Shown here: one piece after another, positions 5,686-59,750 of the stretch
Layout: every line of letters begins with the position of its first letter
Numbering within the stretch: position 1 is the first letter of the stretch
NCBI GenBank assembly: GCA_009103225.1
Contig: RHPI01002533.1
Span: forward strand, 523,368-587,367
Reading direction: 5' to 3'
Origin: Chlorokybus atmophyticus
Lineage: Eukaryota; Plantae; Mesostigma and Chlorokybus algae
DNA length: 64,000 bases
The notes under the pieces: generated by a model
The model's input: only the letters and a program-made list of their open reading frames with translations
What the model was told of the DNA's origin: nothing
Databases searched by the model: none
Made by a program: the position numbers and the translations under genes

Positions 5686-7765
5686 TAGTACCCATCGACA
5701 TAGTTGGTGTTGATGTGATATTTGGCCAAGAATGGCACGACCAAGTGTCTATGACATTAGATACTGCTGCACGGTTGTGCACAGTAAAGAAAGGGCGTAA
5801 GCGCATCACTTTGTCCGTGCGGAGGTCGCATAGCTTGGAATACAAGCAAACGGACCCTGCGTTAATTACGGCGCTTCAAGTGAAGCGTGCGTTACGTAAA
5901 AACACACCTGCTTTTCTAATGCACTTAACGTCGAGTGATGATGTAATGCCTGGCAATACAGAAGGTGTGACGGACATCATTGAGAAATTTCAGGATGTGT
6001 TCTCAGATGAGTTGCCGGGCTTGCCCTCTGATCGAGGTGTCGGACACACAATACCTTTAATTCCTGATAGTGAGCCTCCAGTTCGGCCTATATATAGGTT
6101 GAGCCCTCGTGAGAGGGGGGAAATGGAAACACAGATGAAAGAGTTATTGGAAAAGGGATTGATTGAACCAAGTTCTTCACCCTTTGGCGCACCGATATTG
6201 TTTGTTATGAAAAAGAATGGGAAAATGCGCATGTGTGTGGATTATCGTGCTTTAAACAAGATCACGGTAAAGAACAGATACCCGTTGCCAAGGATTGATG
6301 ATGTGTTTGACAAGTTGTCAGGGAATGTGTAACAATTGGGGCCCGACCACTAGGCTATGGTAGTAAAAGACACTTCAATGAGTGAGGTCTGTCACAGTTT
6401 ATCCCAATTCGTGACATTCCTCCCCAATTTTACCCATGAGTTCCTCATAATCCAATAAGGCACTAGCCCACGTCGCCGTGTTCGCGGCCGTACCACGATT
6501 GGTCTGCCCGCGGCCTGTTGGATCCGGCCCACGAACAGCCCTGACCGACCGAACGGCCATCCTTACCGCATGACCCGCCATTTCAGCGCGACCGCTCACG
6601 CGGCCTTAGGTTGAACTGGCTCGGCGCGCAGGTCGTAATCCCGCGCCCAGCCTAGGGCAAGCCGCCCCACATGATTTTGTTTTTGCCTTGGATCTGCCTC
6701 AGTCCCCCACGGGAATTGAACCTGAGACGCCAAGCTACGTTACCATTGTAACAATTGGGGCCCGACCACTAGGCTATGGTATTAAAAGACACTCCCATGT
6801 GTGAGGTCTGTCACAATTTATCCCAATTCGTGACAGAATGCGTACTTTAGTACGCTAAACTTAACAAGCGGCTAGCATCAAATCCGTATTCATCCTTCGG
6901 ATGTCTATAAGACAGCATTCAGGACACCTACGGGCCAATATCAATACAAAGTGTTACTTTTCGGCTTGACTAATGCACCTACTGTGTTTCAGAAGGAAAT
7001 GAATAAAACTTTTGGTGATATGCTTGGTCAACATGTTATGATATACTTGGATGACATCATTGTCTGCAGTAAAACAAAGGAAGAACGTAGGCAACACTTG
7101 GAAGCGGTGTTTGCAAGATTGCGCAAGCTACTTTGTTGGCAAATCTCACCAAGTGTGATTTTTGTACAACAGAGTTGCCCTTTCTTAGTCACATTGTGAG
7201 TGGTGCGGGTATCAAACCTGACCCTCGCAAAGTGCAGATTGTAAAAGAGTGGCCCCAGCCTCAGAATGTCCATCAACTAAGGTCGAGAGTTGGCAAACTA
7301 CTTTCGCAAGTTCATGATGGGGTACTCGACAGTTGTCATGCATTTGACCAAACTGCTGCGTAAAGATGCCCCGTTCATTTGGACAACAACACAAGAAGCT
7401 GCTATGCAGAAGGTGAAGTTGGTTATAACATCGGCGCCGGTGTGAGCACTGCCATATTGGGACAAACACTTCACAGTGGTCAGTGACGCATCAACACTTG
7501 GGTGTGGTGCGGTACCGTTGCAAGATGGTAGACCTTGTGCTTATGAGAGTAGGTAGTTCATTCCTGCAAAGGTGAACTACACTACGACAGTCTCAAGAGC
7601 ACGAACTATTGGGTATAGTTCCTGCTCTTGAGACATGGAGATGTTACTCAAAGGGTGTTCACTTCAATGTTGTGACTGATCACAACTCGTTGGTGTATTT
7701 CTCAACGCAGCAAAACAGCAAGCGCGCTGGAATGAGTTTTTGTCCAGGTTCACCTTTGAACATAA
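5675..7765 (+). pseudogene. Gypsy element D pol: protease C-terminal half, reverse transcriptase, RNase H (split by a TRIM; stops and frameshifts)
   Basis: [15 protein letters not shown] (PR). [51 protein letters not shown] and YLDD (RT). DAS..G.GAV..Q.GRP.AYES and TDH (RH). Confidence 0.93.
6328..6835 (-). mobile_element. TRIM (terminal-repeat retrotransposon in miniature): 508 bp, 89-bp LTRs, 5-bp TSD GAATG
   Basis: LTRs 6328-6416 and 6747-6835 (TG...CA, 5 mismatches). TSD GAATG at 6323-6327 and 6836-6840. PPT GGGGAGGAA abuts 6416 on the minus strand, and a TGG-starting PBS-like site abuts 6747. Removing it rejoins the RT sequence LSGN|AYF. Confidence 0.93.
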
Positions 7766-8944: not shown

Positions 8945-9266
<322 letters not shown>

Positions 9267-17000: not shown

Positions 17001-17135
17001 GCAGACAGGAGGTTTCTCTTTCCCCAGCTGGCGGCATGGCTCAAACCCAATCAACGCGCAGGGCTGACTGCGGTGTGGCCCAAGTTGTTGGAGGAGGCTG
17101 CAGCCAGAGCAGCTGAGCTTGCTAGAACTTGCTAG
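11084..17135 (+). CDS. DHX37: DEAH-box RNA helicase DHX37/Dhr1 (40S ribosome biogenesis), multi-exon
   Basis: N-terminal [16 protein letters not shown]..., [106 protein letters not shown], then HA2 and OB-fold. The 5'-most exons are less certain. Confidence 0.92.
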
Positions 17136-23320: not shown

Positions 23321-26300
23321 TGGGAGGTTGGAACCACCTATGAGGCGGCGCGGCATGCAGCCGCCTAGTGCAGATGGTGGAGGAGGGCCAGGTGCAGCTG
23401 GGAGCGGTGCAACCTCATCCCCAGGGCGAGCAGTGCGTGAGCATGGGAGGGATAGGGGTGGTGGACGGCGCGGGGGAGGACAGCGGGAGACGACTTCACA
23501 AGGTGAGCTCTTAGAGCGGAGGTTGTACAGGGCCGTTAGGCCAGGTGCAGGTAGCAGTGACCGCCCCACGCCAATGGACGATGGCGACTCGCCCAGCCAC
23601 CCACGCAAGCGTGCCCGCCTTCGACAAGCACGCCGCTCTGTCCGCTCACGCTCAGGCTCTCCGCAGTGCAGCAGCGACCTTGGCATGGCGTCCGGCCCTT
23701 CCTACAGCTCCTCCTCGTCCGATGAAGATCAGCAGCAGACGCCCCTGGCAGCACCCGTCACGCAACGACGGCAGCGCCCCAGCACCTAGCTCCCCTGGCG
23801 ACGGTGGAGGCGGCGACCGCCCCGACCTCCCCGACGACACCGCTAGCGCCCGCTACTGCCATTACTGAGACGACGACGGAGCCGCAGGCTCCGGAGCCAG
23901 CGGGCAAAACTGTGCTCCCAGCATTANNNNNNNNNNNNNNNNNNNNNNNNNNNNNNNNNNNNNNNNNNNNNNNNNNNNNNNNNNNNNNNNNNNNNNNNNN
24001 NNNNNNNNNNNNNNNNNNNNNNNNNNNNNNNNNNNNNNNNNNNNNNNNNNNNNNNNNNNNNNNNNNNNNNNNNNNNNNNNNNNNNNNNNNNNNNNNNNNN
24101 NNNNNNNNNNNNNNNNNNNNNNNNNNNNNNNNNNNNNNNNNNNNNNNNNNNNNNNNNNNNNNNNNNNNNNNNNNNNNNNNNNNNNNNNNNNNNNNNNNNN
24201 NNNNNNNNNNNNNNNNNNNNNNNNNNNNNNNNNNNNNNNNNNNNNNNNNNNNNNNNNNNNNNNNNNNNNNNNNNNNNNNNNNNNNNNNNNNNNNNNNNNN
24301 NNNNNNNNNNNNNNNNNNNNNNNNNNNNNNNNNNNNNNNNNNNNNNNNNNNNNNNNNNNNNNNNNNNNNNNNNNNNNNNNNNNNNNNNNNNNNNNNNNNN
24401 NNNGCAGCGGCGGCGCCGCTGGCCCGCCATACGTTGGATCCCGGACCCGATCGTGCGGCCTGCGACGAGGCGCCTCGGGCCACTCAAGCATGTCCCGCGG
24501 TCCCTGCTGCAGCGCCACCAACACCTGCCAGGCTGCCGGCGGCTGCCGATGAGCCGAATTCGTCATCGTCTCCAGCGGCTGTGCCTGCTGCGCGCCGAGG
24601 CGGCCGAGGCCCCAGGGCGCGCCTGGATGCGCCACCTTTTGGATCTGGCGACCCGTCGATACCCTCTCCCGATCGAGGTGGTGGCCGCTGCGACTTGTGC
24701 AGCCGCATTTGCGCCACTGCAGCAGGATTGGCCGCCCACACCCGAGCTTGCTAAGCCCGCCGAGATTCTGCTGCGCGCGCGCAGGCAGCCGTTCCTGCTG
24801 CCTCAGCACGCCACATGCCGCCTGTTCCGCCCTCGGCTACGGCCTGGCAGTGGCTACGTGGCCGCGACTTAACCGCGGACCTCCTACCTAACGGCGCCTA
24901 AAACTTGTTGCATGTGCCTTACGGCGCGCGCATTGATGTGTCACGCTGTGCGGCGCTGGCTTTAGTGCGCATCCTGGCGTCTCCAGCCGAATTGGACGGC
25001 TGGAACTTGTGGCTGCTTTTGCCACGACTTCTACTGACGGCATGCCACGATCAAGACCAGCGACGCGTCAAAGCTACCGTCCGTGACCGTTGCCGGCGAT
25101 TTGATTCAGGCGACTGGGAAGGATTGAAGGCCGATCGTATCGCGGCTGCGGCTGCAGCAGCAACACACCGCATATCGACGGAAGCGGCGGTCAATCGTCG
25201 CCCATTAGACTGAAATGTTCGCCGTGCCATTGCACTCGCCCACGCAGGCCAGCTGAACAGAGCTGCCGCGGCACTGACTCCGTCCTCGCCAGCACCGGCC
25301 AACGACGCAATAGTGGCTGCTTTGTGCCGTCTCCATCCGGTCCCAGCTGCTCCTGTACCTGCTTGGGTGCCTGATTTTGTGCCGGCCGAAGTGGTCGAAT
25401 TTTCCGCCACTAATTTGAGGGACAGCCTGCTCACGGCGCGCCGTCTCACTGCTCCTGGTCTGTCCGGGTGGACGTACAAACACATGCGTAACATCCTGCT
25501 AGCGGGCGCCACGCACACGTCGACGTGGCATCAATATTATAACGTCTATCAGCTGCTGGTGACCGGGTTGGTCCCGGCGTCGGTGGCGTCCGCTCTAGCC
25601 ACGTCATCTTTATCAGCCCTTTGCAAAGACCCGGCTTCGGCTGCTGCGGGTGTCCGTCCGATCGCAGTGGGAGATGTCCTGCAGCGCCTAGTGGCACGCT
25701 TCTTGCTGGCTCAAGACCGCCCGGCGTTGGCTGGTTTTTTCAAGCCATGGCAGTATGACGTGGCCACAAGATCTGGAGCAGCTCGTGGCGCACGGCCTAT
25801 GCGTCTGGTCCGAGGCGCATCGAGACAATGTCATCTTGCGGTTGGATAGTTCCAATGCTTTCAACACCGCTGACCGCGCAGTAATGTTCGCGGAGCTCCG
25901 AGATTATCCCTTCGCGGGTTACATTCCGTTTGTCAGATTGTAGTACGGCACCCCGTCCAGCCTGTGGAATCGGCGTGGCGCGGACGTCATTGCCAGCCTA
26001 TATATTCGACGGGAACCAGACAAGGGGATCCATCGGCGGGTGTTCTTTATGCTTTGGTGCACACCCGCGTGGTGGCCCATGTGCTGCCAAATTACCGCTG
26101 TGCACGCGCTGTCGTGTTCGCTGATGACACTTTCCTGGTCGCCCCCCCTGACGAGGTGACAGCAGCATCACGTGCGCTCACGGCGGAGATGGCGTCCGTG
26201 GGCCTCCACATCGCCCTCCACAAATCGGCCGCTTATAGCGCTGACGCAGCCGCCTTGCGATTGCTCGAGGTGGAGGCCAGCGTCGCGCGTTGCAATAATG

Positions 26301-27760
26301 GCCTCGTAGCCCTGGGTGTGCCGCTTGGTACGGTATCTTTTACGGAGGCGCATTGCCAGAAGACCTTGCAGGCTTTTGTGGACAATCTGCCGGCCATTCA
26401 GGCCTTGCCGGACACACAAGTGGCGGTGCTACTGCTAACTAAGTGCGTGGCGGCACGCCCAGGCTACCTCATACGTACGGTCGCCCCATCACGGCCTTCC
26501 GGTCGGCTTTGGCATCTTTTGACGGCGCGCTTCAAGGTGTGGTCCGAGCCCTGATGAAGTCGCCCGCGTGGCCGGCAGCGTCGCACCGTGCTGAGCGCGT
26601 GATGGCCCGGATCTTGCTGCCCATCCGATCGGGCGGTCTAGGGTTGCGCTGCAACTACCTGCATGCACCCGCGGCTTACGTCGGCGGATGGGCCGCAGCG
26701 GCATGCCAGCTGCGCCGCCGTTTCACCGCCCCTGCATCACCGCCTTTCGTCCACGCCATCGACAACGCCGACGTCGGCGTTTTGCCTTTTCAGCGCGATT
26801 TGAGAGCTGCAACGCAGCCGCTGCCATCATCACGCCACACAATTCCGCCTTTTTCGGCATTGGCGCGCGCGGAAGCGCGGAAGCTGCAGGAGGACATCTC
26901 CGCCACCGTCGACGCCGCGTTGGTCGACCAATTCAATGCCACCCCGACTACCGCCGACAGGGCGCGGCGCCAATCAGCTTCGGGTGTCGGTGCTGACGCG
27001 TGGCTGTCGTCCTTGCCACTTTTCTCGGCACTACGCATTTCCGCCGACATCTTCCGGACCGCGCTCAGGACGCTGCTAAAACTGCCGCACCCACTGTTGG
27101 TCAACGTCGAGCACTGCTTATGCGGGGGGCCGCTCACGGCCGAGGGCGCGCACCTACTCCGCTGCCCCTTGGGGAGGTGCCGCACGGCAACGCATGACGC
27201 GTTGCGCGATGAGGTATATGGTGTGATGCGTGACGCAGGGTTTTTGGTCAGTAGGGAGCAGAGCGGTTTTATGCCGATACTGCCGGGTGAGACGAGGGGG
27301 AGGCGGGTGGACTTGGTGGCCTCCGAACCCGGTCGAGATACGCGCATGCTCTTGGATGTCACAATCACCGCATGCGGCGAGCAACAGGGAGGCGCAGCGA
27401 AGGCGGCGAAGCAGGTGAAGCGGCGGAAACACAACGATCACCTTGCCGCCGACACTTTCCATCCCCTCGCCGCCGAGACGCACTGCACCCTGGGCCAGAG
27501 TTTTCACGACGTCATTGACACATGCGCTAGGAGGGCACTGGCTGCATGTGACCTGCCATTGCGCAGGCTATCGGGCTACTTGGCTCTGTACCGGCAGCGC
27601 GTGTCATGCGCGCTGCAGCGCGCCCAGGGCATCACCATCCTTGAGCTGGGGGTGGCAGTCGTAGCGGCAGTACCAGGCCGGGGTCCGGTCCAGACGGCGG
27701 CGCCAACAGCGGAAGCGGACGCTGTACTGGCAGCTGCGGCAGTGTAGTTGTGTAGGCGTG
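23320..27760 (+). mobile_element. CRE/Zepp-like RLE non-LTR retrotransposon, copy 2: near full length but decayed (N-terminal Zn finger, RT, CCHC, RLE)
   Basis: CDLC....AGLAAHTRAC; APGLSGW; GVRPIAVGDVLQRL; LDSSNAFN; GTRQGDP; VFADD; LPIRSGGLG; CLCG..HLLRC...HD; RRVDL; LDVT; FHPLAAET. Frameshifts and stops are present, with an N gap at 23927-24403. Confidence 0.9.
23927..24403. other. Assembly gap (N run)
   Basis: Contiguous N characters. Confidence 0.99.
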
Positions 27761-32184: not shown

Positions 32185-32809
32185 AGGGCCACTTCTGGTG
32201 ACCCAAGTTGTAGGCGGTGGGGTTGGTGGCGGCGGCGGCGGCGGTGGAGTTGAACGCGGCAGGTGTTGAGAGTATTCCTACATACGATCAGCATCGACCC
32301 TCCACACAGGAGTAGAAGGTCGTAAGGACGAGCACTAGGTCCGGACTTAGCAAGATGGCATCGTCGGACCAAACTCCGGACTCCAGACTAGAGCCTTACT
32401 AACTGCTTCGTATCTCCGCGTATACTTACTCATCTTAGGCGTGTAAGAGCTTGTTGGAAAGCTCTGGTTGTAAGGAAGACAACACAGCTTAGAGCGCGTC
32501 AAAAGGCTGAGTATAGCTTACGCAGTGCTTGCAAACGTAGACGTGTGTGTAACTGGCTGGTATAAGAACCAGTGGTCAACTTGTAATAGATGAATGTGAT
32601 GTGACTTGTGTATGCTCTGGTGGCAGTAGCTCTGTAATTGTGTGTCTATGCTTGCCTCAGCTACATGTGCATGCTAGTCCTTCAACAGGTTATGGGCCCA
32701 CACTACGCTTGAGGAGTGTGAGACTAGCTTGTGTGCATAGTAGTTCTACACTACGGTAGCTTGTTGGTAGCAGAGCCTTGGGTGTCCACTGCAAGAAAGG
32801 CAGGCTCGA

Positions 32810-35800
32810 CAGAATTGGAGGCGACCTACGACAAGGGGCAGATTGCAAATCTGGACACCGACAACTACAGCACATGGTGCGTAGAGATGAAGGCCTTGCT
32901 CATCCACAAGAAGGTGTGGAAGTATGTCGATCCGAAGGCACCAACACCAACACCAGGAGCGAACACTGTGTGGTCAGAGCATTCAGCAGAAGCACACTCT
33001 TTGCTTGTGTTGAACTGCAAACCGCATCACTTTCCCATGCTCATTGCATGTGAAGATGGTAGACAAGCTTGGGAAAAGCTATCAGCCGTTTTCAGAGCCA
33101 AGAACAACGCCAGAAAACTGCAGCTACGCAAGCAGCTGAGCGCACTCAGGAAGGAGGCAGTAGAACCCATCGCAAAATATGTTGCGCGCGCGAGAGAGCT
33201 GTGGGCGGACCTCATCAACGTCGGCCACAACATGGGGGAGACGGAGGTTGTGCTGGCTGTTGTTGCAGGGCTACCAGCAGAGTACGAGGTCGTTGCAACA
33301 CTGCTGGAGACATCGTCATCGGAGCTGACGCTGGACGATGTACTACCGAAGCTGCTCACCGTGAAGCTGAGGGTGATGAAGAAGGACGAGCAAGCTGATG
33401 CCGTGACTTTCTACACCAACAAGCACGGGAAGAAGAGCAACCATGAAGAGAAGAACAAGGGCAACAAGCCGGGCAATCCTCGTCACAAAGATCTCACATG
33501 CCACTGGTGTGGTTGGAAGGGGCACATTGTGAAGGATTGTAGGAAGAAACAACAGGGGCAACGAGCACGAACACAAGGAGAAACATGTCGCCTTCACTGC
33601 ATCCAGTTCGAGGGCGGGCACAGCTTTCTGGGTGGTGGACTCTGGCTGCGATCGTCATCTCACACCAAACAAGGAGGTGATGGAGGGCTACAAGAAGCTG
33701 ACGTCCACAATCAAGGTGGCGGGCTTTGGTGGCTGAGGGAGTTGGCAACGTACGACTCCAGTGCAAGGTTGGTAACACACTACGCGAGGTGTTGTTACGC
33801 AACGTCCTGCATGTTCCTAAGGCTATTGCGAGTCTATTCTCTGTGAGGGTTGCGGAGCGCTTAGGCGCGGAGATCCTATTTCGGAAGGGTGGCTGCACAG
33901 TCATTCTTGATGGGGTCGTGCACATGGTTGGAATCGCTGATCCGGGAGGGCTCTACCACGTGGAGCAGTACCCTAAGGACATTGACATTCAAGCCATGGT
34001 GGTGAAGGACAAGGAGTCGCCAACATTGTGGCATCGAAGGTTCGGGCATCTCAGCTACGTCAACCTCACTCGCCTTGTCGCTGAGAAGATGGTCAAGGGC
34101 ATCCATCTCAGCACAGAAGAACTCAAGACAGCATCAGGTGCACTTTGTGAACCATGTCTGGTTGCAAAGCAGCATGCTATGCCATTCCCATCATCCTCTT
34201 CTAGCAGTCAGCATCCTTGCGAGCTTGTGCACATGGATGTCTGTGGCCCTATGCGCATTGTGGCGAAGGGAGGGGCCAGGTACTTTGCTACATTCCTCGA
34301 CGACTACAGCAAGCTGTCCATCATCTTTCCATTGACGCTCAAGTCAGAAGTTGCTGGAGCTGCGCGCACAGTTGTGGCCTTGTTAGAGAGGCAGTCTAGC
34401 AACAAGATGAAGGCAATGAGGAGTGACCAAGGAGGGGAGTACATCAACAAGGAGTTGAAGGAGTTCTTCACCAGGAAGGGCATACGCCACGAGACAACGG
34501 CACCCTACACCCCGCAGCAAAATGGAGCAGCTGAACGCCTCAACAGGACACTCTTGGAGCGTGTTCGAGCCATGCTCAACGACACAAAGATGGAAGACAG
34601 TTCGTGGAAGGAGGCGGTACTTACTGCCAACTACATCCGCAATAGGTCTCCGGTGAGCTCAGAGCAGAAGACTCCGTGGGAGCACTTCTATGGAGCTACA
34701 CCAGATGTGAGTGGTATGCGTTGTTGACATACACACGTGCAAGTGTCCCACGCGGGCAGCTTGTCCTTCAACATCAGCTCCTCCATTACTCACGCACACC
34801 GCTTGCTCGCACGCAAGCCTTCACCTTTTTTTCTCATGCCTCCATGCTTCTCATGGATGATCTTGAAGTCATTCACTTCCACAGCAACTTGAGCCTCATG
34901 GTTGACCACCAACCTTGCTCCTTGCTGTACATACATGTTGCCTTCATGCACCCGCTGCATCTGTCCTCGTTGACAGTGCCTCCGCCTCTGGTATCAGCCC
35001 ATGACTCCTCTAGTCAACTTGCTTTCCACCACTTGCAGCTCCCACGGGCTCCGCAATCGCAACCTACTTGTGCCTCCTTGTTGCTCATGACCTTGTGGTA
35101 TCTTGAAACTCCATCCTCAACCACCCTTGTCAATGCAGCAACCTTGCGCACACCATGGCCATCTTCATGTCCACGTCCACATGCTTCTGCGTACAGCCTC
35201 CAAGCTTCACGCCTCCAGGATGCTCCATGTCCAGCTTCCAAGTGATCACGCTTCCAGGATGCTCATCACGCTTCCTCGCATGCACCTTCAGCCAAGCACT
35301 CCACATGCTTCAACCAAAGTACCAAGCACTTTACCGTGCTTCACCAAGGACTGCCCTCGCTCCCCTTCTCGGAAGGTCCATCAAACACTCCACCGTGCTC
35401 GACCTCAAGGGTTGCCATCTGCTCCCCTTCCTTCCACCAAGCACATCAACGTGCTTACCACGGGTTGCCTCTCGCATTCCTTAAAGCGCTTCACCACGCT
35501 CCACCAAGTATTCCTCGCACTCAGCAACACGAGCTGACATCTTCAGCTCCCACGTATCAAGGACGCCTCCTCTTCCAAGTACTTCACGTACTCTTCTTCA
35601 CTCACCAGAAGATCTCCATCATCTCCTCCTCTTGGCCCATGTACTTCCGCATTTCCTTGTGGGCCAGTAGTAGCTCCATCTTCACACTCCAAGTGTTGCA
35701 GTCGTCAACGTCCAGTAGTCCAATCGCGATCTTCAAGCTGTCCATGCTAGTGGCCTTGGTTGGTTGCCCTCTCTGCTCACAGACCTCACAACCCCACACT

Positions 35801-38288
35801 ACCACAAAGCAACTACAGCTATACATACAATTGTAACACACTCCATCAACCTACACAAGCATGTGTGGGCCTATAACCTGTTGACATACACACGTGCAAG
35901 TGACATGCCAACAACAACAACAACAACATGAGCATGACTGCTACTGCCGCCATAGCATCCGCACACATGCTACATCGTGACCTCTTATCTTCATTGCAAC
36001 AAGTCTGGGCTTTATACCCCGCCAGTCTCTACACACGTCTACATTGGCAAGCACCGCGTGCGCTATACTCAGCCAATTGCTGTTCTGTAAGCTACTCTGT
36101 CTAGCGCACAACCAGAGCTTTCCAACAAGCTAAGCCACGATTGCTAAGCTTACGTATTCGCAAAGCTACGCGATTTCTCCCAAGGCTCTACCAAGCAGTT
36201 TGGTCCGGAGTCCGTCATGACTCGACCGTCTTGCTAAGTCTGAAGTCCACGCGCTTCTTCCTGGTACCTTCGACCCTCGACTCCTGTATGAAGGGCAAGC
36301 TGATCGGATACAAGCATCACCCATGTAATACCTTCAACATGCGTGTGTTTGGATGCACGGCATATGCACTAGTGCCTAAACAGCTCAGGCACAAGCTGGA
36401 GCCGGTCAGCAAGAAGGGCATCTTCGTTGGCTATGAACCGGGTTCCAAGGCTTACAGGATCTTGCTCGAGGATACTCAAGAGATCATTGTGAGCAGTGAG
36501 GTGGTTTTCCACGAGGGATTATCACAACCAGAAGCAGGCTTCTTTCCTGAAGATGAAGCACAGCCGGAGCATCCTGAAACAATGAAGGCTACAGGCAAGG
36601 CCATCATCAACAACAAGGGTGAGCAGGACTTAGCTGTAGCAGGCCAAGAGGAGCCATACCAACAGCAGAAGCACGCAGCTCGGAGATACCCAGTGAGGGA
36701 GAGAAAAGCACCTGATTTTTTACACAAGGCACACGTCGTCAGTGTGCAGAATGAGGAGCCAAGCACCTACGAGGAGGCATTGTTAGCACCAGATGCGGAG
36801 CAATGGCAGCGTGCTATGGACGAGGAGATTGCGTCACTCCATGCCAACAACACTTTGTCACTGGAGCAGTTACCGCAAGGAGTGAAGACCATTCCACTGA
36901 AATGGGTCTTCAAGGTGAAGCGTGATGATCAGGGCAACATTGAGCGCTACAAGGCAAGACTGGTGGCAAAGGGCTTCTTGCAGCAGGAAGGTGTGGACTT
37001 TAACGAAGTGTTTGCACTTGCAAGTAAGCATACCACCTTCCGTGCACTGCTAGCTGTGGTTGGTGCTGAAGACCTAGAGCTGCATCACCTGGATGTGAAG
37101 ACTGCCTTCCTCTATGGAGAGCTGGAGGAGGAGATCTTCATCGAGCAACTACCTGGATATGAGGAAGGGGAGAGAGGCACAGCGTGCAAGCTGATCAAGG
37201 CACTGTACGGGCTGCGATAGGCACCGCGTATGTGGCACATCAAGCTCACCAAGGAGCTGGAGGCACTTGGCTTCACCGCATCCTCTGCAGACCCTGGGCT
37301 CTTCATCCATGCAGACAACAAGGTCTGGCTGCTCGTGTATGTTGATGACATCATCATCACCGCCAGGCAGGTGCACCACTTGCAGGAGACGAAACTTGCT
37401 CTACAGCAAGCATTCTCAGTTCGTGATCTTGGAGAGGCCAAGTGGTTCCTTGGCATGGTGATTGAGCGCGACAGGGCGGCTCGCACAATCAAGATCAGTC
37501 AGGAGCAGATGGTGAGAAGACTCGTCACCAAGTTTGGGCTCTCTGAAGCGAAGACCAAGACCACACCGTTGGCACTTGGCACTGCCCTCATCAAGGCAAA
37601 GGATGAGGAGGTACTCGACAAGGCTCGGTATCCATATGGTGAGCTGGTAGGCAGCATGCTCTATTTGGCAGTGTGCACACGTCCCGATGTTGCATAAGTT
37701 GTGGGAGTACTTGCTCGCTACATGTCTGCACCGAGCATGGAGCACTCGAGAGCAGCAAAGGGGGCACTACGCTATGTTGCTGGGAGCGCAACAGTTGGCA
37801 TCAAGTTTGGGAGCGGGAGCACTGAGTTGGAGGGCTACTGCGACTCGGACTTTGCTGGTGACCTCAACAGCAGGAGGTCCACTACAGGCTACGTCTTCAA
37901 GCTGAACGGAGGCGTGGTGAGCTGGAACAGCAGGCTGCAGCCAACAACAGCAGCATCTACATCAGAGGCTGAGTACATGGCAGCGGCAGCAGCAGTGAAG
38001 GAGGCACTCTGGCTTCGCAAGCTCATGGCAGACTTGGAGCACCCCATGGCGTGCATCGTCATCAACTGTGACAACCAAGGAGCCATCAAGTTGTTGAAGC
38101 ACCCTATCGCCTCGGCAAGGACGAAGCACACTAATGTCATGCATTACTTTGTGCGTGACAGAGTCACAAGGAAGGAAGTGGAGTTTCAGTACTGCAACAC
38201 CGAACGCATGCTGGCGGACTTCATGACAAAGCCATTGTCACCGCTCAAGTTCAAAACTTGTTGCGCAGGACTTGGCATCTATGTTTGA
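32810..38288 (+). pseudogene. Copia gag-PR-IN-RT-RH polyprotein, inactivated
   Basis: NYSTW..MKALL; knuckle CHWCGWKGHIVKDC; PR VDSGC; GAG-pre-integrase WHRRFGH; IN HMDVCGP, RSDQGGEY, PQQNGAAER; RT KARLVAKGF, LVYVDD; RH DSDFAGD, EAEY. There is a frameshift near 33590, stops at 37218-37220 and 37695-37697, and a nested insertion. Confidence 0.95.
34722..36339 (-). mobile_element. Non-autonomous Copia relative nested antisense in the host integrase, TSD TGCGT
   Basis: TSD TGCGT at 34717-34721 and 36340-36344. 5' LTR 35879-36339; PBS GGTTATAGGCCCA; gag remnant LDVDDCNTWSVKMELLLAHK; PPT CGCGTGGGA; 3' LTR reduced to 24 nt (34722-34745). Confidence 0.9.
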
Positions 38289-39353
38289 CTACAGGAGCAA
38301 GCGTTGGAGGTCAAGCTGCTCGCGTGGGAGTGTTGAGAGTCATTCCTACATACGATCAGCATCGACCCTCCACACAGGAGTAGAAGGTCGTAAGGACGAG
38401 CACTAGGTCCGGACTTAGCAAGATGGCGTCGTCGGACCAGACTCCGGACTTCAGACTGGAGCCTTACTAACTGCTTCGTATCTCCGCGTATACTTACTCA
38501 TATTAAACGTGTAAGAGCTTGTTGGAAAGCTCTGGTTGTAAGAAAGACAACACAGCTTAGAGCGCGTCAAAAGGCTGAGTATAGCTTACGCAGTGCTTGC
38601 AAACGTAGACGCGTGTGTAACTGGTTGGTATAAGAACCAGCGGACAACTTGTAATAGATGAATGTGATGTGACCTGTGTATGCTCTGGTGGCGGTAGCTC
38701 TGTATCTGTGAGTCTATGCTTGCCTCAGCTACATGTGCATGCTAGTCCTTCAACAGCAGGACGTAGGGGCGGGGGCGGCAATGTTGCCCGCACTACGCAG
38801 GCAGATATGTGCACATTGAGTGGATTCTTGGCTTGTGGCCTGGCAAATTCCATGTCAGCTGGTTTGCAGAGTCTGATGAGTGTTTTGCGTTATGGTGCAT
38901 CCAGTCGGTCTGCGGCCAGTGCATGCATCAGTGTGTAGCGCTCATGTGATTTAGGAAAGTTGCATGATCACCGCAGCTGGCATGTTAATTTGCATTTGTT
39001 CAATTTGTGTTAGGGTGTCGATGACTCAACATGTTTTGCACTCGAGCCAGAGACGTTGTGGGATTTACAGGCCAGTTGAGCATGCGTATGTGAACTGATT
39101 GCACGCATGACTTACAGTTCTTCATGCGTGCATGTGCATTGTCGAGCATTTCCAGAAGAGGGATTTCACCATGCACTGAGTGTTACTTGTATAACAAGTG
39201 CACAGCATCGTGCATTATGGGTAGTTCTATATGTGTACACGTGCATGAACAAGCACTTCCACAACAGATATTCACCATGCTGATGAGTAGCCCAACCAGT
39301 TACCCATCATGTAGAGGTGGCATTAATTAATACATACAAGTGCACGGTGTTCG

Positions 39354-40065
39354 TCACCACGATAGGGGTTCACTATGCACTGAGTAGCCTAAGAACTGAA
39401 GCATTTTCCTGCCTAGTTACTCTGAATAGGCTGGGGGTATGCATTCCACTAGTGTGCTTTCAGCTTGTATCCAGTGGATGCCTAGAGCTTTGCGCCACCC
39501 TGCTGTTGTTCCACGTGAGCCTGCCTGCCCATACACGGGGTACATCTGAGTCTGATGGCCAGTTTTGCTGAGTTGCTGTCTGTGTCCGGTGTCCAGACAA
39601 ACAGCGAAGGCTCTTCTGCCTGTGCTCACACGTTATGTCCAGTTGAAGAAGGGGCTTGGTCTCGAACAATCTGTGTCTGAAGGTGGGGAGTGCGAACATT
39701 GTGCCGCAAAGCGTGACAGTGGCTTCCATGTGATCTGCAGCTCCAGGTATGTTCTCAAGTATATATGGCTTGTTGGTCTCATGTAAGCGCACGCGCAGTG
39801 AGTGAAGTGATGTGCTGTGGTTCCATTCAATGCCATGTTCTCTCCTTTGTGATGCCGGTATGCAAGTGGCAAATGCTTAACAGGGTGGTAATGCCCAGAT
39901 CACATCGTATTGTGACAGGTCCACATTGAGCGCATCACCGAGGATGAAAGGGAACGGGTATTCCTGCTGTTCGAGTATATCCACACCAGTCTCATCGAAT
40001 CCGGCGCGATCGAGTCCCATGCTGGCACCACCACCGCCGCAGCAGAGGTTAAGCAACTTTGGTCT
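39354..40065 (-). pseudogene. C5 cytosine DNA methyltransferase, compact bacteriophage/bacterial type, inactivated
   Basis: Motifs in order: [18 protein letters not shown]; II GVDI; III GDAL; IV IWALPPC(*); VI KPYILENIPGA; VIII FRHRLFE; IX-X WRKALGIHW...ECIPPAYSE. Stops at 39877-39879 and 39417-39419 plus a frameshift. No intron within the catalytic region. Confidence 0.88.
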
Positions 40066-40229
40066 GTGTGGTGTGCCATCTTGTGTCTTGTGAGTGTGTG
40101 TGGACAGCAGGGGTGGTGAGGCACTCCACAGTGGGATGAACGGCAGCGGTGGAATTGTCTTCTTATTGGTAGGTACGCGGGTCCCACCTATGCGGATGCA
40201 TGATGTTATGCCCTTATGTCTGAGGCACA

Positions 40230-40445
40230 CCACGATGTTGTGCTTCTCTATCTTCAGGTGTTGGCCATCACCATCTTCGAAGCGCACACTGTGTCGAGCT
40301 GCACAAAATCAGGTAAGTTAAGTTTGTTGTTGTATCGTGGTCACACAGTGCAAACGACACCTTGAACAGCTTGTCTTGGTTCTGGTTGTATTTGTAAATG
40401 CAACCTGGTTACCATTGCTGGTCGGCAGCCCAAGAAAACCATGAC
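40230..40445 (-). pseudogene. Tudor-like domain fragments upstream of the methyltransferase
   Basis: WFSWAADQQW*PGCIYKYNQNQDK followed, across an intron-like segment, by [22 protein letters not shown]. The second block is in frame with the MTase ORF (39877-40287). Confidence 0.45.
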
Positions 40446-40760
40446 GGAACAGTTCATTAAGCAGCAGCAGCATCACCACCTGCATGACCGAGCTGCCGAT
40501 ACGCGTCTGCGCTATCTTCTGGTTCCTTTAAGGGAATGCAGTTGATAACCCATGCATGCCTGACTTGTGCATGGCAGTGTAACAAAGCGAAGGCTAATGA
40601 TGCTTACCTCATCATCGATGCTGGGCCTTGATGCTGCCGCCGCCTCCAGCGAGCGCCAATTGATGCTTCCACGCCCACAGCGAGGTAGCGTAGGCTGCAT
40701 TGAGGTTGCGAGTCATGAACATGAACCTGTCCATGCTGGCGGGTGCAATCGTGCGGATCT

Positions 40761-43700
40761 TTACTTACCGATGCCGCTGAGTTGGGCATTGGTTGTGCGT
40801 ATGAGCCAGGGAGGATGTAAGCGGATGCATGCGGTGCAGCCGCAGCTTGGCCCACATGCACTCCCGTTCTTGCGGCACTTGCAGCGTCGTGACTGACATT
40901 GGTCCTTTTTGCATTTGCAGCCGTGCATCAGCAGTTGTGCACGTGCTCTGGTGTCGCGGATGTTGTCTTCGGTATCCATCTGCGCTTTGTATAGCCCGTC
41001 AACAAGGGTGTAGCCATACTCCTTCAGCGGGGGTTGGGTGACAGCAGCCTGGCACATCTGGGACCACATGCGGACCACCCACATGACTCGCTTTGCATGC
41101 AGCAACAGCGCTGAGGTAGGCGGCATTTCATCCTTGTACTCTGCACCCTTCTCCCAAATGCTCTCTTTGACCACATGCAGCCATTTCTGCAAGCTAACGT
41201 GGTCGTCCTTGGGTGCTGGGCCACCATTGACGTCAGTAAACACACTCTCTCCGCTGCTGTGAGCTGGGAATACGTTTTTGTGCTTGCTGTAATAGGCGCA
41301 GCCAATGAGTCGCAGCAGCAGGGTAGTGGCCGAATGCTCGTCCAGGCAGTCAACCTGGGTGATAAAGGCGCACTCCCGGGTAAGCACATCAGCCCAAAAG
41401 AACTGCTTGCTGATGCCGGCAAAGTAGCTGGTGTAGTCACATCTAGTACTAGCAAAGAAGAGCATGATGAATAGCGACCTCTGTTGTGCAGGAATAAAAC
41501 GCAGTTGCGGAAGCTGGCCCAAGTGGTCAAATAGCTTGCTGAGATCAATGATGGGCGGTCGGCTGCTGTGGTTGAGACTAGTGGCAACTTGTATGTACAC
41601 TTGCTTGCTGCCAGGTCCCCACTGCTCCATGACGGCGAGACCAATGATGGAGGCATCGGTATCCCGGGAGTAGATCAGAATTTGGCTGTGTGCGCAACGC
41701 AGCGCGTGCAGCCAGACTCGAGAGTCACTCTTGGCGTGGTTGCACTCAAACAGGTCAGTCGCTCCAAAGACAATTGGTCCACCATTGTTGCTGACAACTC
41801 TGGCCTTGTCTTTCCATTCCGCTGCATCACTGCCTCCTGCCATAATAAAAGTCTAACCTGGCCTTAGGTGCTGGGCGACCATTTCTGGCAAGAAATTGGT
41901 CATCAGCTCGCACAAGCTTCGTTTCAAGCTATGGTCAGACAGAAGATCACGCCACGAGCGCGGCGTCTCAAAGGTCAGGGTGAGTGCTTGCCCACTGCGC
42001 GCTGATGCACCGTCACGTGACTGTTGCAAGCTGAACTTCACTCCCGTAGCATGTGCTGGATCGTCAAAAAGCAAATGCAGCTCCTTCACCGAGGGGTTGT
42101 ACATGCGCGGCAGAATTGAGCTGCGGAGGGTCTGTACCAGATAGTCTTGCTTGTTGCCAACGCCGCTGCTTGGGCCCTTGTTGATCATGAACATTCCCTC
42201 CGCTATCACCACCTCCACCCCAGCTGGGTAACGCGTCAGCTAAACCCCCTCACAGGATGCGCACAGCTTAGTCAAGAACTTAGCTTTGTCTCCCTTGCGC
42301 ATGCTGCCATCTTCGGCAAACAGAGCCAGCGGTATCTCCTGGTACTGAGCCATGCATGTTTCTTGGGTGGCATTGCTTTTGCAAAGCTTCTTAAATGTGA
42401 GAGTCTTTGTCTTGGTCATGCGCGCCAGCATTTTGGTTGACCTCTGCACCTGTTTCTTGACTTGCATCGTCTTGAGACCAAACCTTCTCCCAACATTGGT
42501 TGCTGTCATCTCCTTGCAGTGTATAACCTTGGCATATAAAAGGAACTGGAGGCCAATGTCGTAGTGTCGTGCAAGGTCTTGAGCAGCTCCTGGGTTGGCT
42601 TCTCGGGCATTGACTAAATGCAGGAGCTGCTCCTCATGACTGGTGCCCAGAACATCAGCATTGGTTACTATGCTCAACATTGATCTCACATTGATGCCGG
42701 TCTTGTCGCTGGCAATGGCGAGGAGGTGTGGCCATGGCATTGGGTTCTTGTCGTAGTGGACTCAGCATAGACAGCACTCTCTTGACGACCAGAGCACAAT
42801 ATGGAAGGTACAACGTCTTGCGCATCATGTAGTCTGCATTAGGCCGGCATAGCGTGGACTTGAGGTCTTTGTTTATCAGTGTTTCGTGTGCTTCGTCACC
42901 AGCCACATTGCTGCACGGTTTGCCTGTAAGACTGACTGTGAACGCTCCTGCATGCAGGTGCTCAAGGACTTCTTCGGGCCAAGTCAGGATATCAGCTAAG
43001 TGCTGTGTGATGAGACGCTAATAATGCGGACGGTCCCATGCAAATGCCAGTGGACCAAGTGCCTTGTATGAAGCAATGCGCAGCCTCCAATTGCTAGTTC
43101 GGATGGCAAAATACAGGCCAAGGTAAGCTGCAGCGTCACGTGTTGTATAGTTCCACCACATAGCCCATGTAGCATCCTCCTGCGCACGCCTGCGTCCACA
43201 GCCCATGAACTTCATGTAGTGCCGTTCGTCCGGCACTGTCATATCTTCAATGCTAGGCACCTCAACTCTACCCCAAATGTCTGTGCAGTCTTTGTGGAAG
43301 CAAATCAACTGATAGTGATAAATTGCTTCCCATGTTTGCACCAGGTATGCGTGCATTCGTTTCCAGTTGCTTCCTTCTGCTATTATGTTGCGTGCTGTGG
43401 AGGCTGGTATTCCTGCTGCAATAGCCATGGCATCCAAGCCCGCATCCCAATACACCTTGAAGATGACGGGAAGCAGATTGTACAAGGCGTGCCAGTCGCC
43501 TGGCATTGGCAACACCCACTCCCAATAACCTGATTCTGTGTTCTTCAGATGTATCATCAGACTGAAAGTCTTATGATCTCCCACCACCACAATCTTATGC
43601 TTAGTGGCATCAATTCGCAGTCGTTGTTTGAGCTCGAGGAGAGCTAACTTCAAGACGTCTGGCTTGTCAGGGTTATAAGGAAGCAATGGCATGTACATGA

Positions 43701-44826
43701 CTCTGCTGGGTGGCTTATCTTCTGTAGGGCACAAGTTGGCGACCACATTCTTCAGGGAGTTGGTGTCGAAGCCTGGCATGTCTGCACGCTTTATGACAGT
43801 GTTGTGCAGGACCTTCTTGAAGTGATTAATTGCCTCCTGCTGGTGCGCCTGCAGCTCCGTGATTAAATCTGAAGGTGGAGGGTACACATAAGGCCGCGCT
43901 CCCGGAGAAGGCAGTTGTAACGCAGCTGGGTCTGGCATCTCCATCTGGGCCTCCTTGCGCATGCGCGCCCAATTGGCAGATACTGGTTCCTCAGCAATGC
44001 TAGTTGTCCCACTCGGTGCTGGCACAACAACTTGTGTAGTCGTGCAATGCAGATCTTTGTCAGCGCCACCGTTGTATCTCAGCTGGCCGTAAACTCTGAA
44101 GTCCCAGTTGTCTATGCTTGCAATGATAAACTCACTGTCATCAGCCTGCAGCGGACATGTGGCTTCCTGCAGCGCCTTGCAGCGAGACATGATGGCGCGT
44201 TCCAACATGCTAGCGCTAGTGCATACGCCGACACGGTTCAGCAACCAGATCAGCTGACTGGATGTGCTCATTGCGTCCACGCAGTCCGCGATCGCCACAT
44301 GCATGCATGAATACGCATGCGAGTTGCGGGTATATACTGCACTACTCAGCAGGTACGCACACCTCAGCAAGTTTGCGCGCTCCCACGCCTTGGGTTCGTC
44401 CACTTGTTTAATTTTCACGCTGCATAGTGCCTTGAACAGGCGCTGCAAGTCGGGGTGACTATTGTCCAGCTCCTTCGTTTCATTCAAGAAGCGAATGGCA
44501 GCACATGTGGACTTATTCAACCGGCAGTGCCTTGCAGCCTCCTGCTTCATCAACCCCGCGAGGTATGCCAGTGTTTTGTCGCTCAGTTCGCTTGCATCCG
44601 GTACAGCTTTATCCACACTGTCCGCACAGTTCTCCAACATGCACACAGCAGGGTCAACCCACGATGGCAAGATTAGAGACCCATGCCTCCGATGCCCAGT
44701 GATCACCACGACCGCTTCGCCCAGCACGCGCTTGATAGTGCGTAGCAGGTTTGATGATGCGAGTACTTGTACAGCCTGGCTAGCTCGCCCAGACGCACCG
44801 GTGTGTTGTGTTGCAGTAGGTGCCAT
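40761..44826 (-). mobile_element. AcademX-type DNA transposon ORF (DDE transposase + XPG/PIN-like nuclease + Cys8 finger), decayed
   Basis: SIDNWDF, VVGDHKT, PGDWH, LGPLAFAWDRPHY, DEAHETLINKD; DGSMRKGDKA; IAEGM, LLFDD, HAKSDSRVWLHA, YSRDTD, CDYTSYFAGISK, PPTSALLLHAKR; CKCKKDQCQSRRCKCRKNGSACGPSCGCTAC. About 1300 codons, broken by three TAG stops and frameshifts. Exact TIR/TSD not found. Confidence 0.8.
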
Positions 44827-44909: not shown

Positions 44910-47290
44910 CTACAGCTGCTTGCACCATGACGGACTAGCGTTGTCGCTGCCCTGTCCGAGAGCATCAGACACCTCTTGCAAGCGCTCCACCTTATCGTGC
45001 AGGGCATTGGCATTCGCCTGTGCTATGGGAGCCATGTGCTCTGCCTCTGTCAGCCTCAGGACGGTGGCATCGTATATATTCACTCGGTCATTCAAGTCAG
45101 CTTGCACACACTTTCATACCACCAACTTAGTCAGCTAACACGCACAGATGCAATATCGCCGTCTCATCATCTCGACACAATCACCACTTACCTCTAGCTA
45201 TGATTGCAAGTCTTCATTGCATGTGGCGAGGTCTTGCAGCTGGCTTTGGCACGCTCTCCACAGACAGTCCCACTCGCTGCGTTTGTCAGCATGCAGGTCT
45301 TGCGCGTCAGCCCATCTCATATGCTCAGCTTCCAATTGTTGCACCACAGTGTGCGCTTTGTCATGCGCTGCACGAAGCTGACCTCGCAGCTCATTCACCT
45401 CCTCCTGCATGTTCTGCCTAGCGCGTTCAGATGCCTGTGTAGTGATCTCCACACTGTCATCTTGCTCGCGTGCGCTGCGCCATCCCAGCGATCTTTGCCG
45501 CCATGACTTGATGGCGATCGCTAGCACTCTGCAACTGATCGTGCAACACTTCCTGTTGCAGCCGCAGTACCTGCACCTCTGCACGCCACTTTTTGTCACA
45601 GTCCTCGAGCTCACGCCGCTGCTGACTTGATGCAGCTTGCATCGCAGATAGCTGGGATTGCAGTGCTTGCTGTGTTGTCAATCCAGCCTGCAGCGAACAT
45701 TGCCGAGCTTGCTGTGTCGACAATGCAGTCTGTAGATTTGAGGTTAGACTGTTCACCATGTCCAACAGCTTTGTCCGGTCCTCTTTCCATGCAGCCATTA
45801 CATCCTAACACACGCAAGTACCACCCCCAGCATGCAGCTCACTACATGCATACACATGCAACATTTTGTGAGCTAACAAATTGAACTTGTCAGCATTCCG
45901 CACAAACCTGCACCGTGCACAAGCTGTCGTCATCATTCTCAATGTTGAACGGCACAGCACCATCACCAGTATCTTCTGCACAACATAACACACAAGAGTT
46001 GCACAACATCCTTCAAATGCGTCTCGCTCACAGACACGGCACACCAGCTCCCTATCTTACTTATGCTGAGGTGCATACATTGGTTGTGTGTGCACAAACA
46101 CACATACCAACCCTTAGGTGCCTTGCAACAACACAACCCAAATCCATACTCAACCGCTGCATGGATAATACCCTTCTTATATTCACGTCGTGCATTACCA
46201 AGCCACAGTGATTGCAAAGCACATTAGCATCAAATCTATCATTGTCAAGGATTGTAACTAATGGGGCGAACAAAAAGAGCTTGCGGACCTGCACCGGGCC
46301 AGAGTCCGGCCTCCTTAGCAGGCTGGTTATTGCTGCCTCCATTCCAAGCTGTGTCTTCCTCCTTGTCCGCCATTCTGGCTGAAAGGGTATTCAAGTGATA
46401 GCATGATTGGCTGTTGTGACTTATGGAAAGAGCGCCCCGACTGGCGCCTGTTATTGCAATCAGATGGCGTGACGCAAGGTCGCATCAACAGCTGCTGCCC
46501 AATATTGGGATCCACATTCTCTGCGTCATAACCACGCATGGCCTGTGTGGACAAGTGGGAGACTCACATGTCAGAGCAGGTGGGCCCACAACACATGCAG
46601 GCATGGATAGGTAAGAGAGTAACAAAAAAGACCGTGTTCCCATACCAACAGCCTCAGCATCATGCAAACTGACTAACTGCATGACTCACCAAGACCGCTG
46701 GCCTTGTGATATATGCATTGGTCTCCACCCTGGCTCCTGGTGGCACAAATTGAGGATGAATACCCTGCACGCAAGCCACAATATCAGGCAATTGCTCGCA
46801 CTCCACCTCAACCAGTTGCTCATATGCAAGCAACTCTGTCGTCATGTCAAGCAGCCAACACGCATGTTGCACTCACCGGTAGCATTACCAGGTGCCGCCG
46901 GTCTGGGGCAACACGCCATGTGCGCCCGGAAGTCAATGCTTGCATATACACTTCTCTATTTGGCACCCCGTCCGAGATAGTGAGGTCAGTGCGTAGACTA
47001 AGGATAATCTCGGCCTGTTTGCTACGGGTACTGCGTGCACTGTCTGCCTTCTGTGTCTTCCGCTTCTTCTTTACCTTTTCAGAAGGCGTAGGAGAGGAAC
47101 TCGTCTGTCCCTCAACTAAAAAATCATGCTCGTCAGCACCAGGGACAGCCGCCTGGGACTGTCTCAGCGGCATGCCCGCCCCATTTTCCCCACCTCCTGC
47201 CAGCTGTGCACCATCAAACAAAGGGCTTCCGTGCAACTGCGACCCCGCATTGTAAAAACCCCCATCACTATCTTGTTCACGCTCGCTCAT
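44910..47290 (-). pseudogene. Intron-containing accessory gene upstream of the Academ ORF (disordered N-terminus with a basic NLS-like stretch, coiled-coil C-terminus), apparently decayed
   Basis: MSEREQDSDGG...KVKKKRKTQK; later blocks QQALQSQLSAMQ...EEVNELRGQLRAAH...QLQDLATCNEDLQ. There are GT/AG boundaries but the frames are broken. Confidence 0.45.
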
Positions 47291-59224: not shown

Positions 59225-59589
59225 CATTGGCAGTCTGCTTGCGTGCGTGCATGCGCTTGTGCACACGCACCCTGTTAATATTGTTTGTGTTCGCGCATGC
59301 AGCTTCTGCGTAGTCTGATACGAAGGCAGTGTTTGTGGTGACATGCAGGTCGAGTACAATGCAGCGCAGCTCCTAGCGCAGCTTGCTCAACCTGGCATTT
59401 GCTTGCAGCCAGTCTCTTTGCCAACAGACACTGATAGGCAGAGCAGTGTGGCTTGCAATGCTGCAGGGGTGATGGCTGTTTTAAGTTCTTGTCGCCTCTA
59501 AGTGACCTGCGTGCGATTACTTGCATGAGCTGGTGCAGAGTGCTTGGATGCAGACACCGCATGTTGCACGTCAATGGCAGCACGCGCAG

Positions 59590-59750
59590 TGTGCGTGTCT
59601 TGTTATAAGCACTGGCCGCCACCCGTCCTGTCTATGTCTATAAGCCAGATCACCACACAGACTAGCTGTGTGCGTGTCTTGACATAAGCACTGGCCGCCA
59701 CCCGTCCTGTCTATGTCTATAAGCTAGATCACCACATAGACTAGCTGTGT
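59590..59750. repeat. 79-bp tandem duplication (2 copies)
   Basis: Units start at 59591 and 59670 and differ at about 4 positions. Confidence 0.9.

Follow-up and report, generated by a model that had tools for sequence, protein, structure and literature searches.

We analysed a 64,000-nt stretch of the genome of the streptophyte alga Chlorokybus atmophyticus (GenBank assembly GCA_009103225.1, contig RHPI01002533.1, positions 523,368–587,367 of the forward strand; hereafter the window, with positions counted from its first letter). Its minus strand contains two decayed coding regions in tandem: a nearly full-length transposase pseudogene of ~1350 codons (44826 to 40761) and a minimal C5 cytosine methyltransferase of phage/bacterial type (40062 to 39354). 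The methylase begins 0.5–0.7 kb downstream of the transposase on the same strand with no gene between them; an initial annotation of the sequence had placed it ~700 bp downstream, likewise with no host gene in between. That annotation interpreted the pair as an Academ-type DNA transposon carrying its own methyltransferase. Our results support the Academ-type assignment of the transposase and lean, on splice signals and codon usage, towards the methylase having been part of the same gene and element, as a fused 3′ exon.

The transposase gene is considered nearly full length because it aligns colinearly, over 44382 to 40815 and with only two frames used, with two intact homologues: P0005 (1527 aa; residues 262–1469, E 1e-119) and P0014 (1256 aa, from a crinoid; residues 52–1219, E 1e-109). 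This bears out the initial report of a minus-strand open reading frame (ORF) of ~1300 codons with DDE-like motifs, all of which are present. The gene is interrupted by three in-frame TAG codons (Table 1), in place of which relatives have Gln or Trp (Gln at 43018–43020), and by a single frameshift located between 42757 and 42689. An exhaustive HMMER search recovered 874 transposase homologues (E ≤ 1e-3), while word-indexed searches with the ORFs of 602 and 360 aa returned no relatives, so HMMER was needed to reach them. The closest relatives of this ORF in the database are from Chlorokybus atmophyticus itself (42% and 54% identity) and from Klebsormidium nitens.

Three domains follow one another in this protein. 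The core, which contains conserved D/D/E-containing motifs, matches Pfam DUF6589 (E 1.7e-7), and DUF6589 was found in every long relative tested (E 1e-8 to 1e-14 in most intact ones). The ten best Protein Data Bank (PDB) matches to an AlphaFold2 (AF2) model of the core (predicted local distance difference test, pLDDT, 75.8) are all Hermes hAT transposase, with E values of only 0.02–0.4, followed by P-element transposase; the model hints at a structural likeness to Hermes. Our literature search found no paper tying DUF6589 to Academ. A Pfam search of the C-terminal half gave no nuclease match. At the level of the modelled fold, the XPG/PIN nuclease block proposed initially appears genuine: the AF2 model of the corresponding region of P0014 (residues 740–1230, pLDDT 89.5) matches XRN2/XRN1 (6e-7), EXO1 (1e-4), Rad2/XPG (1e-3) and also FEN1 in Foldseek. 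The nuclease is colinear with the transposase core in one ORF. Five invariant nuclease Asp residues are retained in the window copy, and at four positions where 18 relatives show no variation it has another residue (K74F, R81D, E174K and G267R in the numbering of P0014:740–1230). The protein ends in a CXC (Tesmin/TSO1-like) finger, the Cys8 finger of the initial annotation, which matches Pfam TCR at E 5e-4, below the gathering score. Its cysteines are kept in at least 90% of 20 aligned sequences, and a CXC block also terminates the relatives P0005, P0014 and P0020.

The downstream ORF, METHYLTRANSFERASE, shows methyltransferase motifs I, IV, VI, VIII and X in canonical order. A tblastn search with gp82 of Mycobacterium phage Pukovnik (228 aa) matches it at E 1e-33 (residues 2–134 with 44% and 161–213 with 38% identity), and its N-terminal piece matches phrog_363, 'DNA methyltransferase', at E 9.5e-14, with 322 phage records matched, mostly from actinophages. 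The initial identification of a motif I–X cytosine methyltransferase therefore holds, with the correction that the enzyme is of phage/bacterial type and not a eukaryotic DNA methyltransferase (DNMT). We found 22 database homologues of 136–237 aa (all but one 197–237 aa), with 33–47% identity to the window enzyme over up to 213 aligned columns, and the two best are located in phage contigs. To our knowledge, none of the enzymes in this small phage methylase subfamily has been characterised. On Pfam PF00145, Pukovnik gp82 and Francesca gp232 score 29–33 bits, above the 22-bit cut-off; the broken window pieces alone give no Pfam or NCBIfam match, so the Pfam check suggested initially succeeds for the phage homologues only. 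The methylase piece had no match in a scan of IMG/VR, and a giant-virus origin is thereby neither supported nor excluded. The gene carries a TAA at 39877–39879 for the Gln of PPCQ, a frameshift between 39658 and 39557 and a TAA at 39417–39419 at a conserved Tyr. Homology runs past the latter up to the stop at 39354–39356, which is likely the original one. G+C content at third codon positions (GC3) is 0.51–0.57 in the methylase and 0.60 in the transposase; because the two match, the methylase is either a long resident or arrived with the element, rather than a recent import.

The case for a single gene comes from the junction. The transposase ORF ends in ...ATC G/GTAAGTAA (the slash marks the splice site), which places a perfect GTAAGT donor 5 nt ahead of the stop codon. 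On the acceptor side, 470 nt downstream, the sequence reads ...CTTAACTTACCTGATTTTGTGCAG/CTC, with a YTRAY branch-like site ~20 nt upstream, a U-rich tract and CAG. This predicted acceptor directly follows the final two stops in the frame of the methylase, and the predicted intron contains stops in all three frames. Splicing 40768/40298 would keep the phase, so that the finger tail would be followed by 78 open codons and then by the methylase without a stop. There are 27 GT-AG joins that are in frame and free of stops; of these, only 40768/40298 has a consensus donor, and its acceptor ranks best. Host introns in the window use similar acceptors (TTGCAG/G and TTTGCAG/G). The window, with both strands counted (128 kb), contains GTAAGT 20 times and YYYYNYNCAG 87 times. 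From these counts we estimate chance probabilities of ~0.002 for a donor no more than 12 nt from the end of the ORF, ~0.17 for an acceptor in the open stretch and 1/3 for the phase match, with a joint chance of ~1e-4 for the splice signals, which is a post hoc estimate.

The 78 codons ahead of motif I point the same way. They are open and contain no ATG (p ~0.03), and they have no counterpart in the prokaryotic methylase relatives; all 22 homologues begin no more than eight residues ahead of motif I. In a codon model trained on the transposase, this linker scores a log-likelihood of +6.9 in the methylase frame and −5.7 in each of the other two; the score of the methylase N-terminal part is +8.6. 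The 69 codons just upstream of the acceptor (40527–40321) score −1.9 in the methylase frame. Furthermore, the tail after the finger has 19 residues in the window copy, versus 38–80 mostly acidic residues in 12 relatives with a scored finger. Two-intron models across 40299–40768 exist, none of them with good signals. A methylase start at an out-of-frame ATG (~40079) after a frameshift was dropped in favour of the open upstream frame.

Table 1. Positions of the transposase, the predicted junction, the methylase and other features in the window
Feature	Position	Strand	Basis or remarks
Transposase ORF pieces	43018–44826 (602 aa), 42655–42906, 42240–42740, 41853–42218, 40761–41843 (360 aa)	minus	
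First open transposase piece, 602 aa	43018–44826	minus	N-terminal region and most of the DDE-type core; ends at TAG 43018–43020
Core continued, frameshift, linker region	42243–43017	minus	GDEAHE; ends at TAG 42240–42242
Core motifs	SIDNWD 44101–44118, VVVGDHKT 43567–43590, PGDWH 43489–43503, GDEAHE 42883–42900	minus	
FEN/XPG-like (PIN-fold) 5′ nuclease domain	40926–42218	minus	AF2 model and Foldseek; TAG inside at 41853–41855
Nuclease motifs	IAEGMF 42189–42206, LLFDDP 42057–42074, SRDTDAS 41649–41669, TRCDY 41433–41447	minus	
CXC (Tesmin/TSO1-like) finger CKCKKDQCQSRRCKCRKNGSACGPSCGCTAC	40827–40919	minus	Pfam TCR; cysteine conservation
19-aa tail IRLHPPWLIRTTNAQLSGI	40761–40826	minus	Donor TCG/GTAAGT; unspliced stop TAA 40761–40763
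Predicted GT-AG intron, 470 nt, phase 1	40299–40768	minus	Donor GTAAGT, branch-like TTAAC, U-rich tract, acceptor TTTTGTGCAG/CTC; predicted from sequence only
Putative linker exon, 78 open codons without ATG, methylase frame	40063–40298	minus	Codon log-likelihood
C5 methyltransferase pseudogene, ~225 aa	39354–40062	minus	tblastn with Pukovnik gp82; phrog_363; 22 database homologues
Methylase motifs	I LCCGGGG 40027–40056, IV PPC 39880–39891, VI ENIPG 39742–39759, VIII FRHRLFE 39661–39681, X IPPAY 39426–39446	minus	
14-nt inverted repeat AAGCGCACACTGTG / CACAGTGTGCGCTT	40280–40293 / 45345–45358		Perfect
Coiled-coil-like ORFs	44910–45798	minus	Apparent GT-AG introns
Copia long terminal repeat (LTR) retrotransposon	32264–38755		Complete; LTRs 32263–32688 / 38330–38756, 95.8% identical; TG...CA ends
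gag-like fragment	5099–5845	minus	
RVT_1-like fragments	5505–6332, 25964–26554	plus	
Host DHX37/Dhr1-type DEAH helicase gene	~12600–17135	plus	PDB 6o16, E 2e-55 and 5e-37
Helicase introns mapped by homology	15092–15217 (126 nt), 15480–15612 (133 nt), 15895–16016 (122 nt)	plus	Donors GTATTG, GTGAGT, GTGCTT
Run of 321 C	8946–9266		Unbroken; Tandem Repeats Finder, 100% matches
79-bp tandem repeat	59589–59750		2.1 copies, 95% matches

A variant of the proposed element, and the one pictured in the initial annotation, would carry the methylase as a separate downstream gene with its own start at ATG 40485. DNA transposons often contain accessory ORFs, the frame of the methylase is open over 40527–40321, and only TAA/TGA at 40320–40309 intervene before the linker, so that a stand-alone gene model is permitted. 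Yet the codon usage of this segment is not coding-like compared with the linker, the model has to assume either a 48-nt intron or two additional stops in the space of 12 nt, and it offers no explanation for the GTAAGT found where the transposase ORF stops. We regard this two-gene arrangement as improbable; it would add a small further share to the probability that the methylase lay inside the element.

The assignment of the window transposase to Academ, and to its AcademX lineage (Kapitonov & Jurka 2010 and Kojima 2020, as cited in PMC10045372), is well supported because a DDE-type transposase, a FEN/XPG-type nuclease and a CXC finger form a single protein and because relatives have 4-bp target site duplications (TSDs); it rests on these features rather than on a comparison with Repbase/Dfam Academ entries. 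AcademX elements likewise encode one very large protein with a DDE-type transposase, an XPG/FEN-type nuclease and a C-terminal Cys-rich finger. The relatives' TSDs fit the 3–4 bp reported for AcademX (PMC10045372), and their lengths of 6.4–6.8 kb are near the 5.6 kb reported as the average of Academ elements in bivalves (PMC10294476). The window copy differs in that it has no acidic C-terminal tail and instead a putative extra C5 methyltransferase exon, and in its streptophyte-alga setting. The Academ-type call of the initial annotation is thus supported by the domain architecture of the protein and by the ends of the relatives.

We compared 27 related loci with flanks of up to 10 kb, and a scan of metagenome-labelled contigs gave 23 loci with relatives. 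As elements, the relatives have short terminal inverted repeats (TIRs) that start with CAGTC. Nine full copies of one family are 99.4–99.8% identical across 6.39 kb. Their TIRs are CAGTCATTCCGCAACC / CAGTTGTTCCGCAACC, their termini run from CAGTCATTCCGCAACC... to ...GGTTGCGGAACAACTG, and the 4-bp TSD is clean in eight of the nine copies (TGTA, CTAA, AATA, GTGG, GTAG, AAGT, ACTA and AGTG) and one base off in the ninth. This young, multi-copy AcademX-like family lies on contigs WLWD01 (L009 8522–14906, and also L010–L015, L019 and L021–L023). A second family has the TIR CAGTCGTTCCGCCAAC with the pair CAGTCGTTCCGCCAACGTAA / CAGTCGATCCGCCAAGGTAA; in L005 (8150-21, 14902-21) it has the terminal motif CAGTCGTTCCGCC and a subterminal TCACGTGAAATTT at the 3′ end in common with the first family. 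Some long relatives contain extra N-terminal domains, namely an OTU cysteine protease (P0007 and P0016) or NADAR (P0023), so domain capture does occur in this transposase family.

Several observations, in addition to the open frame at ATG 40485, weigh against a methylase-bearing element. The two related families whose ends are defined have their 3′ terminus ~650 bp past the CXC finger; the equivalent place in the window would be near 40170–40300, ahead of the methylase. No such methylase was found in the 27 related loci (tblastn E ≤ 0.1), and no fused one among ~180 related proteins. The predicted intron would be atypical, because the three homology-verified host introns measure 122–133 nt, so that it is 3.6 times longer. 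Self-comparison of the window finds no second copy of the element, only the Copia LTRs, and both the putative boundaries of the element and its presumed mobility as a unit therefore rest on one copy. Generic inverted-repeat and family-motif searches located no TIR/TSD for the window copy; the relatives' TIR motif gives chance-level matches only, at 38902 (plus strand) and 46443 (minus strand), with no TSD. The only strong inverted repeat is a perfect one of 14 nt (14/14), with arms ~0.5 kb on either side of the transposase ORF, and it would leave the methylase outside the element. Its chance expectation is estimated at ~0.02–0.1. This repeat is probably coincidental because it has no TSD and both arms lie within open frames (the 5′ arm in a coiled-coil ORF and the 3′ arm in the open linker); otherwise it would be a remnant of termini. 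The initial annotation had also named a true TIR between 40450 and 40760 as evidence that would separate the two genes; we found no support for one, and this interval looks intronic.

These points bear most on the possibility that the two genes are chance neighbours, the methylase being either an independent relic acquired horizontally (from a phage, a bacterium or a virus) or the cargo of another, unrecognised element beside a dead Academ copy. The region is a graveyard of transposable elements (TEs), with a Copia element complete with its TSD and reverse transcriptase and gag fragments; the nearest relatives of the methylase reside in phage contigs, none of the related loci or homologous proteins carries it, the intron is long, and the 14-nt repeat encloses the transposase alone with a 3′ spacing that resembles the ~650 bp of the relatives. 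However, chance adjacency needs a coincidence to place GTAAGT at the end of a 1350-codon ORF together with an in-phase acceptor and a coding-like, ATG-less extension of 78 codons. It also relies on an inverted repeat with no TSD and with arms in open frames, and the base composition of the methylase is already host-like. We therefore treat chance adjacency as a serious contender that is nevertheless unlikely. The initial claim of an Academ element with its own methyltransferase is neither proven nor refuted: an in-phase GT-AG join and a coding-like linker speak for it, while the single copy, the 27 loci lacking a methylase and the unlocated ends count against it.

A further alternative is a one-off host chimera, in which exonization at a single locus produced a SETMAR-like fusion that later died, and the methylase never travelled with the transposon. 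The splice evidence is the same as for a methylase-bearing element, and the single copy in the window and the lack of a methylase in any related element would agree with such an event. Against it, the transposase and the methylase are both pseudogenes and carry lesions at comparable density, contrary to expectation for a retained host gene, and no host-type regulatory or conserved context was seen. We consider this origin very improbable.

The window copy is inactive in all of its domains. Each of the stops is TAG or TAA and falls at a codon for Gln, Trp or Tyr. The observed/expected ratio is 0.57–0.65 for CpG and ~1.5 for TpG + CpA, and likewise in the neighbouring Copia element; depletion of CpG with an excess of TpG/CpA is expected from deamination of methylated cytosines. 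The initial annotation had described the two genes as decayed in the same way. Stops and frameshifts do occur in both, but the shared pattern is generic and not diagnostic, because the CpG depletion and TpG/CpA excess span this TE-rich region, Copia included. Disabling lesions number three in 0.9 kb (linker and methylase) versus four in 4.1 kb (transposase), a difference in density that is not significant (binomial p ~0.12), so the idea that the methylase is more decayed and hence older fails.

The Copia retrotransposon inserted 0.6 kb downstream of the methylase and has an intact 5-bp TSD (GCAGG), so the pre-insertion sequence ran from 38761 into 32258. Other retroelement fragments are gag-like and RVT_1-like (Table 1). 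Coiled-coil-like ORFs end 84 nt before the transposase ATG and may belong either to a host gene or to the element. Neither these ORFs nor a CxxC-like motif at 46181–46249 could be accepted as the transposase N-terminus, as they show no significant similarity to the N-termini of relatives. A host gene for a DHX37/Dhr1-type DEAH helicase lies further away, and its homology-mapped introns are those used above for comparison. The window also contains a 79-bp tandem repeat and an unbroken run of 321 C that accounts for a GC-skew dip at 8–10 kb; this run is probably an assembly or basecalling artefact, or else an extreme homopolymer.

We then compared the locus with known systems. DNMT capture has been described for retrotransposons of Symbiodinium (SymbioLINE-Dnmt and SymbioDIRS-Dnmt3) and of Klebsormidium nitens (de Mendoza et al. 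2018, PMC5890265). Like the window case, these are algal elements with their own C5 methyltransferase, and a charophyte lineage is involved. They differ in having many copies, some of them active, and in the source of the enzyme: SymbioDIRS-Dnmt3 falls within eukaryotic Dnmt3, and Klebsormidium also shows a Dnmt3 acquisition. By contrast, the window has one dead copy of a cut-and-paste DNA transposon with a minimal, possibly fused enzyme of phage/bacterial type. DNMT-encoding DNA transposons are mentioned in PMC5890265 only from marine viruses.

Other epigenetic modifiers carried by transposons include TET/JBP dioxygenases (fungal DNA transposons), SET (HarbingerS/MuDR) and VANC (Vandal), and the list of transposon-borne epigenetic enzymes in a 2025 survey contains no C5 methyltransferase (PMC12730594). 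The TET/JBP elements are likewise DNA transposons with a captured enzyme that acts on epigenetic marks, but they oxidize 5-methylcytosine (5mC) instead of writing it, and they belong to another superfamily and another host kingdom. The C5 methyltransferases of actinobacteriophages (Pukovnik gp82, Rhodococcus phage Francesca gp232 and PHROG 363) have 33–47% identity to the window enzyme over nearly their full 204–237 aa and have in common with it the motif order and the YPFxF / RHRxFE / IPPAY signatures. The window enzyme differs from them in its 78-codon ATG-less N-terminal extension, its host-like composition, its eukaryotic TE context and its pseudogene state. Our literature search found no description of a methylase-bearing Academ element, an absence from the searched literature that is no proof, and no cut-and-paste transposon with a C5 methylase except for the remark on marine-virus elements.

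On the reading that we favour, the gene of an AcademX-like cut-and-paste transposon would have gained an extra 3′ exon, a small C5 methyltransferase of phage/bacterial ancestry. An active ancestor would have made a transposase-methylase fusion protein through use of the 40768/40298 intron, and the methylase would have been within the mobile unit and travelled with it. The transposase part would excise and integrate the element, with 4-bp target duplications as in the relatives, and the tethered methylase could place 5mC on the DNA bound in the transpososome, either the element ends or the target; such methylation might, for instance, label or shield the element or regulate how its ends are used again. 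The initial annotation's idea that the enzyme methylates the element's own copies or TIRs, or alters host silencing, is speculation, and the window copy could no longer do so. For membership of the methylase in the same gene or element, the signals come from one copy, and none of the contrary evidence is decisive. The fuller proposal, that an AcademX lineage in early-diverging streptophyte algae had a transposase spliced to a phage-derived minimal C5 methyltransferase, is more tentative and somewhat short of an even prospect. The whole case depends on one dead copy.

Plants and algae silence transposons mainly through cytosine methylation. If the fusion is real, this would be the first eukaryotic nuclear cut-and-paste DNA transposon known with its own DNA cytosine methylase. 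It would be the DNA-transposon counterpart of the DNMT retrotransposons and would mirror the fungal transposons that carry TET enzymes. The known range of Academ elements would then include streptophyte algae. The enzyme would record a gene transfer from phage to alga that was 'eukaryotized' through the gain of an intron and a linker, and the transposon could write 5mC at the very place that its transpososome occupies, be it the element's ends or the target.

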